DNA of 29,739 nucleotides from Fonticula alba ATCC 38817 (lineage: Eukaryota > Protista > Nucleariida), in NCBI GenBank assembly GCA_000388065.2, contig KB932219.1; one strand, 5' to 3'. Below the pieces are notes generated by a model, which was not told the DNA's origin, searched no databases, and saw nothing but the letters and a program-made list of their open reading frames with translations. Both the position numbers and the translations under genes were made by a program. This document shows positions 13,221 to 21,066 of the stretch, piece after piece (position 1 is the first letter of the stretch; every line of letters begins with the position of its first letter).

Positions 13221-13639
13221 ACGGCGGCAGGGGGCCACATCGGAAGATGGCATCCCCCGCTGGGCGTCTGGCTCCCCCGGCCCGGCCGGGCCGCCGGGAG
13301 ATCTGGCCCCCAAACAGGCCAAAGGGAGCGCCCGGCCAGGTCGGATCCCTACCCCCCCCCCGCGCGCCGCGCCGTCTGGCCCCTGCGCGGCGTCCCGCCG
13401 CTTCGCCCGGCACGGCCGCGCGCCCGGCGTGCGCACCCCGCAAGCCGGGCGGACGGCCTTTCAGCCAGGACCCCGGGCCGCGCGGCACGTCCCGGCACAT
13501 GACCCCCCCCCCCTCCCCCTCCCTTGCCTGCCATCTTCTCTCCCCCCCCCCCGCTCTCTCTCCCTCGCTCATCCGCGTTCCCTCGGTGGTTCGCACTCTG
13601 ATCGCCGGGCCGGCCTTTTTTCCCATCCCCGACTTGGCA

Positions 13640-16600
13640 ATGTCCGCATGCAGTGGAGACGCAGAGGCGGCCGGGCCACGGCCGTGCGTGCCGGCCACCG
13701 GCGAGGCGCCAGCGCCGGCGGCGCAAAAGCCCCCGGCCGTGGCCCTGACGACGGCCTGCTTCGCGGTGTCGCTGGCCCGGCCGGCCGGCAGCCCGCGGGT
13801 GGTCCCCTACGCCGCGGTGGCGAATGCCGCCCTGGGGGCGTGCTCCGGCGGCGAGTCCCTGCTGCAGGTGTCCCAGGTGTGTCTGTGTGTCCGCGCGCCA
13901 TGCCCCCGCCTCCCCTGCTTCTAACACTCCCCCGACGGGGCAGACCCTCCACCTGGCCATCGGGAGTGTGGAGCTGGCTCTGCTCGTGACCGACCTCCGG
14001 GTCGACGGGGCCAGCCTGCCCGACGGGGCCATCGACAAGTCGACGCAGGTCATCCTGGCCGCCGGGCCGGAGGTGCAGCTCCTCGACGCGCCGGTGGTGG
14101 TGTCCCTGTCCGGGCTGCTGGGGCATGCCCCGGAGCAGCATGTCATCCTGAATGCCATGCACCTGTCCCTCGGCAGCCTGGATGTGCTCTTCGCGCCGGC
14201 CGGTGGCCAGGTGGCCCGGGCGCTGGCCGCCCACCGGCCCGACGCCCCGGAGGGCCCCTTCTACGCCAGGCACCAGGAGCGGGTGTTCCACATCCGGTAC
14301 GCCCGACGCCGGCCCTGCGCCTGGGTCCCCCCCTCCCCCGGCCGCCGACTGACGCCTCGCCTGCTTCTCGCTCGGCCCTTCCCCCGGCCGCCCGGCCCCC
14401 CCTGGCCCGGTGTCCCAGGATCTGCCACCGGCCGACGGTCCCCGGGCTGGCGCTGCGGGCCAGTCCGCGGCTCTTCTCCTCGCTGGGGCTTCGGCAGCAC
14501 GGGCGCCCGATGCCGCTGGTCGTGTGCGACCCGCCCCCGGTGCTGGGGGTCGTTTGGCTGGAGACCGATGAGCCCTTCGAGCAGCACGACCAGGCGCGCG
14601 TGCAGCGCGAGCTGGCCGGCGCCCCGCTCCATGCCGGGCACGTGCGTTCCCCCGCCCCGCGGGCATCCCCCCTCTGGCCGGTGTGTGTCGCCCGCTCACG
14701 CGTCCTGCCCCCCNNNNNNNNNNNNNNNNNNNNNNNNNNNNNNNNNNNNNNNNNNNNNNNNNNNNNNNNNNNNNNNNNNNNNNNNNNNNNNNNNNNNNNN
14801 NNNNNNNNNNNNNNNNNNNNNNNNNNNNNNNNNNNNNNNNNNNNNNNNNNNNNNNNNNNNNNNNNNNNNNNNNNNNNNNNNNNNNNNNNNNNNNNNNNNN
14901 NNNNNNNNNNNNNNNNNNNNNNNNNNNNNNNNNNNNNNNNNNNNNNNNNNNNNNNNNNNNNNNNNNNNNNNNNNNNNNNNNNNNNNNNNNNNNNNNNNNN
15001 NNNNNNNNNNNNNNNNNNNNNNNNNNNNNNNNNNNNNNNNNNNNNNNNNNNNNNNNNNNNNNNNNNNNNNNNNNNNNNNNNNNNNNNNNNNNNNNNNNNN
15101 NNNNNNNNNNNNNNNNNNNNNNNNNNNNNNNNNNNNNNNNNNNNNNNNNNNNNNNNNNNNNNNNNNNNNNNNNNNNNNNNNNNNNNNNNNNNNNNNNNNN
15201 NNNNNNNNNNNNNNNNNNNNNNNNNNNNNNNNNNNNNNNNNNNNNNNNNNNNNNNNNNNNNNNNNNNNNNNNNNNNNNNNNNNNNNNNNNNNNNNNNNNN
15301 NNNNNNNNNNNNNNNNNNNNNNNNNNNNNNNNNNNNNNNNNNNNNNNNNNNNNNNNNNNNNNNNNNNNNNNNNNNNNNNNNNNNNNNNNNNNNNNNNNNN
15401 NNNNNNNNNNNNNNNNNNNNNNNNNNNNNNNNNNNNNNNNNNNNNNNNNNNNNNNNNNNNNNNNNNNNNNNNNNNNNNNNNNNNNNNNNNNNNNNNNNNN
15501 NNNNNNNNNNNNNNNNNNTCCGGCGGGTGGCCTGGGACGCGGCGGATACGGGCCCCTCGCCGGCGGGCGTGCTGACCGGCGACACGGCGCTCGAGGTGTC
15601 CTGCCTGGCGGGCACTGCGCGGACCGGTGCCCGGCCGGCGGACGGCCCGGGCGACACGCGCCGGTGGCTGCTGCTCGAGTCTCCCCCCGCCGGGGAGGCC
15701 GGTCGGCCGCTGTGTCTGGAGGCCGAAGCCAGCCCCCTGAGGGCCTTCCCGGCCGGGCGCGCGGCCATCAGCCCGGCGCTTCACCAGAAGCTGCGCCGCG
15801 AGCTTTCCCACAGCTCGGACCTTTTCCTCCGGTGGGGGGATCACCTCCTGCTGCTCTGGTGCGCCTGCTGTCGCGAGCCGGTGCACGTTCGCATCCACGC
15901 GCACATGTGCACATATACACACACATGCATGCACGCACGCACGCGCGCATACACGCACGCACACATATACACATATACACACACACACACACATACACAC
16001 ATACACGCACGCACACATAAACACGCGCACACATAAACACGCGCACACATGAACACGCGCCCTGGCTGCAGCCGCAGCAGCTCACACCCACGCGCCGCAG
16101 CCCCGACCCGAATCCGCGCACCGCCCTGACCGAAGGCCAGGTGACCCTCGGCCAAGGGGACTTCAATCGGATTTTTGCCCACCACACCATCCTGCAGGCC
16201 GGCGTGCTGACATCGCCCCCGCGCGTCTTCCAGGTGGAGCTGCATCTCCTGGCGGCCGGCCTGCGGGCGGAGCGCGTGGCCCACCGGCCGGCCGAGGAGG
16301 CCTTCCTCCGGCAGTTTGACCGCTCGGTGCTCTCCCAAGGACAGGTATGTGGGCCCGTCGTCGCCGGGGCCCGGGCCACATGCCCCCCTCTGCTGGCCCG
16401 CCCTCTTTTGGACACACGCTGACACGGTCCCCCTGCGTGCGTGTGCAGGTGTGCCAGCTGCAGGCCGAGGGCATGGCCCTGCGCGTGCAGGTGGCCCAGC
16501 TGCTGGGGGCCGACCTGCAGCCGCTGCATGCCGGCTACCTGGACATGGCCACCGTGGTGGCCTTCCTGCACATCAGCGATCCCAAGCAGAAGATCCACGT

Positions 16601-18238
16601 GGCGGACCGGCCGGCCTCGGCCCTGGTGCAAGTTGCCCGGCTGGAGGAGCCCCTCCGCCTGCCGCTGGTGGCGCAGGATGGCTTCGAGCACCCGGACCAG
16701 CATGTCATCCATGTGACTGGCGGGACCTTCGAAGCGCTGCAGCGGCACTTCCTCCACCCGGGGCGGACCCTCTTCGTGGGCCCGAACTATCGGCTAGAGT
16801 ACGTATCCGGGGGCGGGAGGGGGGGGGGGCCTTCGTGCGGGGCTCTTGCTTGCGTCCATTCGGTTCACTCCGCGCACGGGCAGTGCCCCTGACCCGGGGG
16901 ACGGGGGGCGAGCAGGGAAGGGAGCTGACCTCGAGACGTCCGGCCCCCGGCACAGGACGCAGCCGACGGACTACCCGAAGCTCAAGCTGCACCAGGTGCT
17001 GGTCGATGAGTCCCTCTACCGGATGAGGGGCGACGGGCTGTTCTTGCGGTATGTCCGGCCGCCGGCGCTGCTGGTCATCAAGTGCATCGTCGAGCCGAGC
17101 GGCGAGGACTCGCCGCCGGTCATCGGCCCGCGGGTGCTGGAGCGCCTGTTCCTCCGGTCCATCCCGCCATCGGGCGTGGTTTGGGCCAAACAGGTGCGCC
17201 TTCGTCAGGAGGGTGGGCCCGTGGCAGGGGCTGGGGGGGGCGGGGACAGGAGCGGGAGCGGCGGGGGGCGAGGCGCCTGATGGCGTGCGGGCGCGCGGGC
17301 CATTGACCGATGGCGTCCTTCCCCCTCGTCGGGTGGCCTGCCGGCGGCAGCAATGCGCCATGCCGCCGGACCTGCCGGGGCTCAGCATGTCGCTGACCTG
17401 GATGCGGGACCTGGCCGACCGGCCGGCCATGGTCGGGACATATGTTCCCGGGGTGACGCGGCTGTCCTTCGGAGCGCACGGCGTCCAGCTGGACCCCAAG
17501 CCGGCGCACCTCCTGGCGCTGGGCTGCGGCCGGCAGCTGGTGGCGCTGGATGCGCTGTTCACGCGGACCCCGTCGGCCCTGTATCCGGGGCTGCTGCTGC
17601 CGCGGGAGGTGTTCCAGTCGGCGGCCGAGGCGCGCAATGAGGCCCGCCCGCCGGAGTGCCTGTTTTTCCAGTGCCGCGGCCGGGTGTTCATGGCCCGGCT
17701 GGCGGACACGCACCATGTGTCGGGCGTGGTGCGCGTGTGTGAGGACCTGCGCGAGAGCATGTACCCCGGGCTGGCGCCGATGTCCTATCTGCAGCCGGCC
17801 CCGGGGGCGAGCTACCTGGGCACGGTGCACCTGCGCGTGACGCCGGCCGACGCGGCGTCCGCCCGGCCGGTGGCCGCCGACATGACCGAGGAGGACCTCC
17901 GCCGGGCCCTGGGCCTTGTCTTCTCGGATGGCAGCATGGCCACCATGGAGCGGCGCGTGCTCCGGGGGCTGGCCCTCAAGCCGGAGCTGCTGCTGGACCC
18001 CCTCGAGCAGACGGTCGCCTGCGGGCTCTTCCACCCGGGCCGGACGCAAGTCCATCTGCACCTCCGAGATGTGGTGCTGCTGCTGCCGCCGCCGCGGCCC
18101 GGGGCGCCGGAGGGGGGTGGCCCGGCGGACGCGCAGCCCGATGGCGGCCCGGCCCGGAGCCCGCCGGCCCCGAGGCGGGGCGCGGCCCGGGCCCCGAGGC
18201 GACGCCTGCGCCTGGGCTCCAGGGCCCCGTCCGACTGA
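13640..18238 (+). CDS. Multi-exon protein (at least about 950 aa) made of about five tandem NSF/Cdc48-like N-domains, no AAA ATPase visible. Exons 13640-13876, 13944-14296, 14419-about 14641, (gap) 15519-15858, 16101-16344, 16449-16798, 16956-17193, 17351-18238
   Basis: All visible junctions have GT..AG, a CTAAC/CTGAC/CTCAC/TTGAC branch point and matching phase (0, 2, 2, 0, 2, 0). Stop TGA at 18236-18238. The gene structure is well supported. The domain call is from recalled similarity to the NSF N-domain, e.g. [44 protein letters not shown]. Confidence 0.75.
14714..15518. other. Assembly gap (805 N) inside the plus-strand gene
   Basis: N run. Confidence 0.99.
15900..16050. repeat. Compound (CA)/(CACG)/(CATA) microsatellite within intron 15859-16100
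   Basis: Directly visible; it explains the spurious HTHT/CVCV translations in the ORF track. Confidence 0.92.
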
Positions 18239-19572: not shown

Positions 19573-21066
19573 CTAGTGCCCCTTTCCGCCGGCTCCGCGG
19601 CGGGCCCGCTCCCCGGGGTCCGGCATTGGCGACGGCGCATGCATGAACAATGGGCGCCAGCCCCCGGCTGGCAGCATGGCAGCCAGGGTGGCCACCTGCT
19701 GGCGGAGGCTGGCGGCCGGAGGCCGGCCGCGCGGCTCCGGGCACCACAGGCGAGGCAGCACGTCGAGCAGGGTCTGCGCAAGGGGGGCACTGGCCTGGGC
19801 AATGGGCGCGGCGGCCGCCTGGACGTCTGGCCGGTCGCCGCGCACCACGCTCTCGGTGATCTGCTCGAAGGAGCAGCCCTGCCAGGGGGCGGTGCGGGAA
19901 AGGCACTCCCACAGCAGGAGCGCCGCGCTGTAGACACCCGCCGGGAGCAGGGCCCCGGTGTCCAGGGGGCGCTTGCGGCGGAAGGCGGCGATCACCTCCG
20001 GCGCGGCATACCGGGCGGTCATGGCGTTGAGCTCCGGCGCCCCGGCCACCAGGGCCGAGGCCCGGTCGGGGTTGAGATTGCGCGAGGTCCCCAAGTCGCC
20101 GAGGGCCACGCGCCAGGACGCCCCGTCGGGGCTCTGGCTGACGAGCACATTGGCCGGCTTCAGGTCGCAATGGGCCACGCCATTGGCGTGCATGGCCTCC
20201 AGCCCGGAGGCCCACTGCTGGCACACGTCCAGGCGGGTGTGCAGCGAAAGGGCGATGTCCGACTGGAGCAGGGTCCCCAGGTCGGCCTGGGGGCGTTCCA
20301 TCACCATGGCCGGCGGCTGGTCGCCGTACCCGTAGATGCGCACGATGTGCGCATGGTCGCGGAGGAGCCTGGCGACCGGGCGAAAGTCAGTGGCCATCGG
20401 CGTCGTGCCAGGGGGCATCAGGGGGGGGGGGGGGGGGGGGGGGGGGCCGCCGAGGATGGTCCGCCAAGCGATCTAGCGCCNNNNNNNNNNNNNNNNNNNN
20501 NNNNNNNNNNNNNNNNNNNNNNNNNNNNNNNNNNNNNNNNNNNNNNNNNNNNNNNNNNNNNNNNNNNNNNNNNNNNNNNNNNNNNNNNNNNNNNNNNNNN
20601 NNNNNNNNNNNNNNNNNNNNNNNNNNNNNNNNNNNNNNNNNNNNNNNNNNNNNNNNNNNNNNNNNNNNNNNNNNNNNNNNNNNNNNNNNNNNNNNNNGTG
20701 TCACGGCCGGCGGGCCACCCGGCGGGCAGGGGGGGGGGGGCGTACCACATGAGTGCAATTTCATTTTGGAAGAGGGCCACCTGGCGCGGAGTCATCTTGG
20801 TGGCTGGGGTGATTGCGATTGCAAATGCATGGGGTTGGGTGAGTCTGGCGGACGCGCGGAGCAGGGGCAGGGGAGGGGGCCGCGCGCTGGCGCACCTTTC
20901 AGCTGCTTGATGGCCACGGTGTCCGGGCAGCCAAGACGCGCGGAGATGCCGGCCCCGATGGCGCGCGCGGCGAACACCCGGGCCTGGGCTCCGGTCCCGA
21001 GGGCGTCATCGACCGGGGCGAAGTCCGCCATGGTGTCCACCTGCATGGCGCCCGGCAGGGCCAGCT
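19573..21066 (-). CDS. TKL-type protein kinase domain of the 19573-27790 gene (exons 20896-21066, 20746-20803, 19573-20368)
   Basis: LGTGAQARV glycine loop, VAIK, FQNEI (alphaC Glu), HCDLKPAN catalytic loop, GDLG, RYAAPE, PAGVYS, LWECL, WCPEPRGRP, and TAG stop at 19573-19575. Confidence 0.92.
20481..20697. other. Assembly gap (217 N) inside intron 20369-20745
   Basis: N run. The flanking exons splice in phase (ALM-W-LLRDH), so the gap is probably wholly intronic. Confidence 0.95.

Follow-up and report, generated by a model that had tools for sequence, protein, structure and literature searches.

An ATPase-free tandem array of predicted NSF/Cdc48-type N-domains encoded in Fonticula alba

The gene H696_06118 of Fonticula alba ATCC 38817 occupies positions 13640-18238 on the plus strand of the 29,739-nucleotide stretch of contig KB932219.1 analysed here (assembly GCA_000388065.2; hereafter, the window) and has at least eight exons. 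In its protein, an N-terminal half unit, Nc0, precedes five units of about 170-195 amino acids each, N1 to N5, which in predicted structures resemble the N-domains of NSF, Sec18, Cdc48 and PEX1, and no AAA+ ATPase accompanies these five and a half domains. We regard a non-catalytic, multivalent binding platform as the most likely role of such a protein, with moderate confidence. An earlier reading of this DNA, made from the sequence alone, had proposed about five tandem N-domains of the NSF/p97 type without an ATPase; this interpretation is largely supported, and the scaffold or decoy function attached to it is putative.

A diverged tandem repeat with shared intron positions

We assembled the exon model of H696_06118 manually, using open frames and GT-AG sites. 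The last exon, taken as query in a full HMMER scan, returned a 100% identical protein, XP_009498153.1 (UniProt A0A058YZY1; 931 amino acids; P0001 hereafter), which is the product of H696_06118, and our spliced product is the same as P0001 apart from 25 residues added at the start of exon 4. Units were cut from an alignment of the paralogues described below, in the numbering of paralogue P0005, as Nc0 (12-112), N1 (138-306), N2 (336-508), N3 (545-722), N4 (742-922) and N5 (940-1136). Profile-profile comparison with hhalign matched the units nearly end to end and in register, with probabilities of 95.4% for N3-N4 (164 columns), 94% for N2-N5, 91.5% for N4-N5, 84% for N2-N3 and 71% for N1-N3. Identity between different units is 11-20% in an alignment of 26 units from seven paralogues, and at the sequence level the repeat is apparent with profiles and not with plain BLASTP. 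Self-comparison, which had been suggested as a check for repeats, was accordingly clear in its profile form, but marginal when the product was searched against itself by BLASTP (best match 25% over 84 amino acids, E 0.11).

The 26-unit alignment has one nearly invariant glycine, the G of a motif by which the sequence-only reading had marked the end of each unit (G-x-h-x2-3-T-x-h-x-h, with h a hydrophobic position). All five motif strings that it listed translate exactly at the coordinates it gave, and four other peptides that it quoted are present in the spliced product. The proposed spacing is right for the first three motifs, whereas in the last two, four residues separate the T from the hydrophobic position before it; a strict regular expression finds three of the five, against a mean of 0.44 in shuffled sequences. 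The motifs had been assigned to five successive units, but they belong to Nc0, N2, N3, N4 and N5, the motif of N1 lying in an assembly gap at 14714-15518. The count of about five thus stands for the full units, but it missed the additional half unit Nc0, and one full unit is hidden in the gap.

Introns recur at two positions of the unit. One of these, at about unit position 55 and in phase 2, is occupied three times (between exons 2 and 3, 4 and 5, and 6 and 7), and the other, at about position 145 and in phase 0, is also occupied three times (after exon 3, between exons 5 and 6, and between exons 7 and 8). Since positions and phases are shared by three units, the gene structure indicates that the array grew by duplication of a two-exon cassette, with N5 having later lost its introns. 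Together with the hhalign comparisons and the 26-unit alignment, these introns bear out the claim of a tandem repeat. A tree of the units places each of the positions N1 to N5 in one group across the paralogues, with four label changes, the minimum, and this grouping by position shows that the array predates the paralogue family.

The half unit Nc0 lines up in register with that half of the unit profile which covers the C-lobe, weakly and without significance (E 0.016, probability 2.8%), and probably represents a C-lobe only. Matches to the unit profile within the window are confined to 14175-18073, and the profile together with a scan of the window for open reading frames (ORFs) found no further units either before 13640 or beyond 18238. 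Weak profile matches at 29.2-29.7 kb were set aside, as they were unconfirmed by tblastn.

Predicted fold of the units

An AlphaFold2 model of N5 (17489-18085), computed from the 26-unit alignment, has a predicted local distance difference test score (pLDDT) of 90.3 and a predicted template-modelling score of 0.82. When this model was compared with the PDB using Foldseek, the best 50 matches were all NSF or Sec18 N-domains, with E values from 2.4e-7, and the alignments with the NSF N-domain covered 194-199 of 199 columns (for example, 1QCS, 195 residues). The model was matched over its full length to the N-domains of NSF, Sec18, PEX1, Pex6 and p97. Structural comparison values were 11.0 for NSF N, 9.6 for Sec18 N, 9.3 for the DEPDC5 N-terminal domain, 8.6 for SPATA5, 8.5 for PEX1 N, 8.2 for Pex6 N1 and 7.9 for p97 N. 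Residues 362-560 of the AlphaFold DB model of a paralogue, A0A058Z4D3, have a template-modelling (TM) score of 0.90 to the N5 model, and a shape search in the ESM Atlas agrees with the N-domain fold.

The ESM Atlas model of P0001, which is independent of the 26-unit alignment, was searched by parts. N3 (P0001 residues 305-485) reached TM scores of 0.60-0.69 to the N-domains of NSF, Sec18 and Cdc48, and N4 (residues 505-679) reached 0.54-0.67 to those of NSF, IML1 and UFD1. For N2, residues 319-512 in a whole-protein model of P0005 match residues 2-208 of the NSF N-domain (E 6e-9), and residues 324-719 of this low-confidence model align with the N1-N2 tandem of PEX6/PEX1. N1 is tied to the fold through its hhalign comparison with N3 alone (71%). 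The modelled unit has the expected predicted architecture, a double-psi beta-barrel as the N-lobe and, after it, a C-lobe made up of one helix and a beta-clam. By these models, N3, N4 and N5, as well as N2 in the paralogue, are predicted to adopt the N-domain fold, as the sequence-only reading had claimed. Among language-model neighbours are stand-alone N-domain proteins of Nucleocytoviricota, at scores below 0.9, which we note as a lead to a giant-virus origin only.

Absence of an ATPase

The Walker A motif (G-x4-G-K-[ST]) is absent from all six frames of the 29.7-kb window and from all eight family proteins, and neither an AAA match nor any other Pfam match was obtained for the gap-free paralogues, which are 990, 1064 and 1154 residues long. 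The layout of a type II AAA+ protein, in which an N-domain is followed by D1 and D2 with Walker A and Walker B, was not found. At the position of the assembly gap, collinear gap-free paralogues carry another N unit, and with no Walker A motif present we rejected an ATPase in the gap. The sequence-only reading is supported both in denying the protein an ATPase and in considering one unlikely within the gap. Its second unit, however, does not just bridge the gap, which hides about one unit.

A paralogue family found in F. alba

HMMER searches with exon 8 over 1.84 billion representative proteins retrieved seven proteins (H696_06118, H696_06122, H696_06124, H696_05299, H696_05766, H696_04153 and H696_05952), all from F. 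alba, and no family member from outside this species; with representatives clustered at 50% identity and a single unit as the query, the family is to be counted as at least seven paralogues. Orthologues in other nucleariids, fungi and holozoans, for which the earlier reading had proposed to look, did not appear in this search. A word-indexed protein search with P0005 and its alignment returned P0005 only and missed known paralogues, probably because low-complexity words filled its candidate list, and is uninformative on range.

The paralogues are 24-49% identical and are found partly in a tandem cluster. H696_06122 starts just past the end of the window, and downstream on KB932219.1 the products of H696_06123 (481 amino acids) and H696_06124 (409 amino acids) are collinear with residues 18-1136 of P0005 (18527-23121 of locus L003). 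From their sequence, these two appear to be one gene split by an assembly gap at 19981-20105 of that locus, which places three family genes, H696_06118, H696_06122 and H696_06123/06124, within about 35 kb. Alignment, tblastn and the unit tree all recover the collinear order Nc0-N1-N2-N3-N4-N5, in which the C-terminal unit is conserved, although N2 of H696_06118 is visible only in its last 26 or more residues. N5 is the best-conserved unit, with 42-52% identity among the paralogues and 24% to the most divergent of them, P0007. A 245-amino acid product, P0003, also covers N5; it shares a 90%-identity cluster with H696_06124 (P0008) and is encoded on short Logan contigs of the public runs SRR35359246 and SRR17204937.

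A transposon origin of the family was rejected, as the paralogues are 24-49% identical, contain introns and keep their unit order. The F. alba genome is reported to be poor in transposable elements, with 0.36% repeats (bioRxiv 10.64898/2026.06.24.734286).

Near-identical DNA, covering 13688-15870 at about 98-99%, occurs in runs labelled as another organism, as sediment metagenome and partly as rat gut metagenome, and F. alba or a strain close to it is therefore present in samples from the environment or from the gut.

Exon structure and the assembly gap

The window is very GC-rich, about 70-79% outside gaps. All eight visible exons of H696_06118, each on the plus strand, keep an open frame; their splice sites are canonical GT-AG and the phases are preserved. 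Exon 1 (13640-13876, GT donor at 13877) is identical to P0001 residues 1-79 and contains the start codon, an ATG behind a pyrimidine-rich leader, then a low-complexity N-terminus and the beginning of Nc0. The remainder of Nc0, with its motif at 14025-14057, and the first third of N1 are encoded by exon 2 (13944-14296), which is bounded by an AG acceptor and a GT donor and followed by a phase-2 intron at about position 55 of the unit profile. Exon 3 (14419-14641) covers the middle of N1, profile positions 55-140 (hmmsearch domain E 1.4e-8), and ends in phase 0 at the donor GTGCGT at 14642. Exon 4 (15519-15858), the 5' end of which lies in the gap and the start of which is listed as 15519 or 15521, encodes the end of N2 (motif 15566-15598), a linker and the first third of N3. 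The middle of N3, profile positions 57-145, is in exon 5 (16101-16344; domain E 8.9e-21), with an acceptor in phase 2 and a donor in phase 0, and exon 6 (16449-16798; domain E 5e-12 and 1.3e-11) encodes the end of N3 (motif 16533-16565) and the first third of N4 up to the donor GTACGT at 16799, in phase 2. Exon 7 (16956-17193) covers the middle of N4, profile positions 55-147 (domain E 3.1e-20). Exon 8 (17351-18238) completes N4 (motif 17435-17470), includes the whole of N5 (17501-18073, motif at 18023-18058) and ends with the stop codon after a tail rich in Pro and Arg. No signal peptide and no domain besides the N-domain units were seen in the product.

Two features near these exons may be recorded separately. 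Intron 4 contains an imperfect CA/CACG-type microsatellite of about 170 nucleotides (15880-16055). The next gene downstream is a convergent ORF of 281 amino acids on the minus strand (19573-20418) that has the protein-kinase catalytic motifs HCDLKPANVL, DLGTS and APE.

The gap itself (14714-15518, with no strand assigned) would, from paralogue spacing and contigs, comprise what is left of intron 3, the last part of N1 and the greater part of N2. On its left side, the 72 letters between the exon 3 donor and the gap resemble intron, and a contig from the source run ends at 14713 in a poly-C tract (14704-14713), continuing TCCCCCCCCC. Homopolymer runs of this kind probably caused the assembly break; similar C-runs are also present at 13480-13550, ahead of the start codon. 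On the right side, the frame of exon 4 is open from the first letter past the gap, and the paralogues P0002, P0005 and P0006 match from 15521 onward by tblastn. A contig of the independent DNA run X5, with one mismatch in 161 nucleotides, extends 39 nucleotides to the left of 15519 in the frame of exon 4, and 30 of its extra letters translate in frame as ..SQGPRVLCTI ahead of RRVAW, mirroring GDVDLLATVRRVVW of P0005. In the paralogue alignment, the points flanking the gap are separated by 203 residues in P0005 (residues 272-474, from late N1 through the greater part of N2), 211 in P0006 and 162 in P0002. The open frame, the X5 contig and the paralogue spacing together argue that coding sequence goes on into the gap, which we infer to conceal about 160-210 residues that complete N1 and make up most of N2.

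The deposited protein XP_009498153.1 joins 14641 to 15596 and so omits 25 visible coding residues (15519-15595). It seems to cross the gap by a false intron, and because of the gap would be short by about 185-235 residues; the true product of H696_06118 is probably about 1,120-1,170 residues long.

Proposed role and alternative explanations

The N-domain of NSF binds alpha-SNAP, that of p97 binds UBX, SHP and VIM partners, those of PEX1/6 bind their receptors, and UFD1 binds ubiquitin via the same fold. To our knowledge, every characterised carrier uses the fold for partner binding. Because the fold binds an adaptor or substrate in each of these carriers, and because the chain has nothing else, a non-catalytic binding platform is the explanation that we favour, by our estimate rather more probable than improbable. 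The H696_06118 protein would then hold several copies, or several kinds, of partner proteins without catalysis. N5, as the best-conserved and C-terminal unit, might serve as a common anchor for a common partner, and the more divergent N1 to N4 could give each paralogue its own specificity.

A number of observations weigh against this reading. Pfam models CDC48_N, CDC48_2 and PEX-1N gave no match in the exons, the paralogues or the 26 units, so that the HMMER comparison with these families suggested earlier came out negative at the sequence level; the best Pfam signal was CDC48_2 at E 0.18 in one of the 26 units, and the unit profile found no match among PDB sequences at E up to 10. Given this silence, homology to the NSF/Cdc48 N-domains rests on predicted structures at 10-14% identity, and all of the fold evidence derives from predicted models. 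TM scores to NSF N are only about 0.5, with a root-mean-square deviation of 5-6 Å, partly because the angle between the two lobes differs. For P0005, the AlphaFold2 model of the whole protein, computed from a seven-sequence alignment, has a pLDDT of 51.7 and is useless for the packing of the units. Three small F. alba RNA runs contained none of the sampled words of H696_06118, the other listed RNA runs were matched by label, and no support for expression or splicing of this copy came from these runs. Eight single-nucleotide polymorphisms in other samples divide into four synonymous and four non-synonymous (T20A and S133A, numbered as in P0001, and D41E and E59G, counted along the piece after the gap), too few to speak for constraint.

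Among the alternatives, the best placed, though unlikely, is that the units bind ligands unrelated to those of NSF and Cdc48, such as phosphoinositides or other membrane lipids, and that the protein acts as a membrane tether or coat-like factor. ATPase-free copies of the fold occur fused to cytochrome b5, CAP-Gly, DEP, VWA and cyclic-nucleotide-binding proteins, and in DEPDC5/IML1, and fusion to such unrelated modules suggests that its ligands are diverse. However, the chain has no transmembrane segment, lipid-binding motif or other domain, and its units are near neutral, with isoelectric points of 5.0-8.1.

A second alternative, which we consider improbable, is that a single chain mimics the crown of N-domains on an NSF or Cdc48 hexamer, or acts as a decoy for it. 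The units would bind alpha-SNAP/SNARE complexes or UBX/UFD1-type cofactors, and would either keep them away from the genuine ATPases or assemble them in advance. In structure, N5 does lie closest to the NSF/Sec18 N-domain, and with five and a half to six units the chain comes near the N-domain count of a hexamer. Yet identity to NSF N is just 10-14%, the units at 11-20% identity to one another are far too diverged for a copy of six identical domains, the first is merely half a domain, and the P0005 model is too low in pLDDT to speak for a particular arrangement of the units. With equally little likelihood, a closed or crown-like imitation of the N-tier might capture SNAP-SNARE or UBX/ubiquitin-adaptor complexes without unfolding them, as an invention of the Fonticula lineage with at least seven paralogues; were this true, the crown-like assembly would regulate membrane fusion or Cdc48 pathways without a motor of its own.

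We give a similarly low chance to the possibility that this is a fast-evolving, lineage-restricted family that is decaying or functionless, or that H696_06118 is a pseudogene broken inside the gap. The restriction of the family to F. alba, the 24-49% identity and partial tandem clustering of its members, the RNA runs and the equal split of polymorphisms would all fit such a history. It is opposed by the eight open exons with their canonical splice sites and kept phases, by a frame that remains open where the X5 contig enters the gap, by the retention of each unit position across seven paralogues, by the confident N5 fold and by the near-identical copies in other DNA samples. Finally, an ATPase hidden in the 805-letter gap or in unannotated exons, which would make this an ordinary NSF/PEX-like ATPase, has next to no credence: the gap does fall within the gene and just 39 letters of its content can be read, but collinear gap-free paralogues hold an N unit there, Walker A is found in no paralogue and no frame of the window, AAA+ D1 plus D2 require about 500 residues and exceed the capacity of the gap, and the unit profile and ORF scan found nothing coding-like for H696_06118 upstream of 13640 or downstream of 18238.

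Conclusions

The N-domains of NSF, Cdc48/p97 and PEX1/6 select what these motors act on. So far as we are aware, a chain carries one or two of them ahead of an ATPase, and a few cofactors, UFD1 and DEPDC5 among them, carry a single one. NSF/Sec18 (PDB 1QCS, 1QDN and 1CR5, and 20S complexes) provides the nearest fold, at 10-14% identity and without a Pfam match, but has one N-domain followed by D1/D2, whereas H696_06118 has five and a half copies and neither D1 nor D2. In PEX1 and PEX6, two N-domains precede two AAA+ rings, in contrast to five and a half N-domains with no ATPase. Cdc48, p97 and VAT (CDC48_N, PF02359, plus CDC48_2, PF02933) match less closely than NSF N, their Pfam models being silent, and they too carry the ATPase that H696_06118 lacks. 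In UFD1 (UT3) and DEPDC5/Iml1, the same fold is free of an ATPase but occurs just once, attached to further domains or motifs, whereas the H696_06118 protein consists of repeats of the fold alone, five and a half times over; no family protein has a UFD1, IML1 or DEP Pfam match, and none shows a UFD1- or IML1-type architecture. A full-text literature search found no description of an ATPase-free N-domain concatemer or of this F. alba family. What is new is the architecture of a known module, its motor-less form being already known from UFD1 and DEPDC5.

A protein of five to six N-domains alone separates binding from remodelling, and the H696_06118 protein is thus a natural tool for asking what the N-domain does alone. 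Its study could reveal new regulation of fusion or segregase pathways. F. alba is an aggregative amoeba related to fungi, and a family that is confined to it and has expanded there may bear on the biology specific to this lineage.

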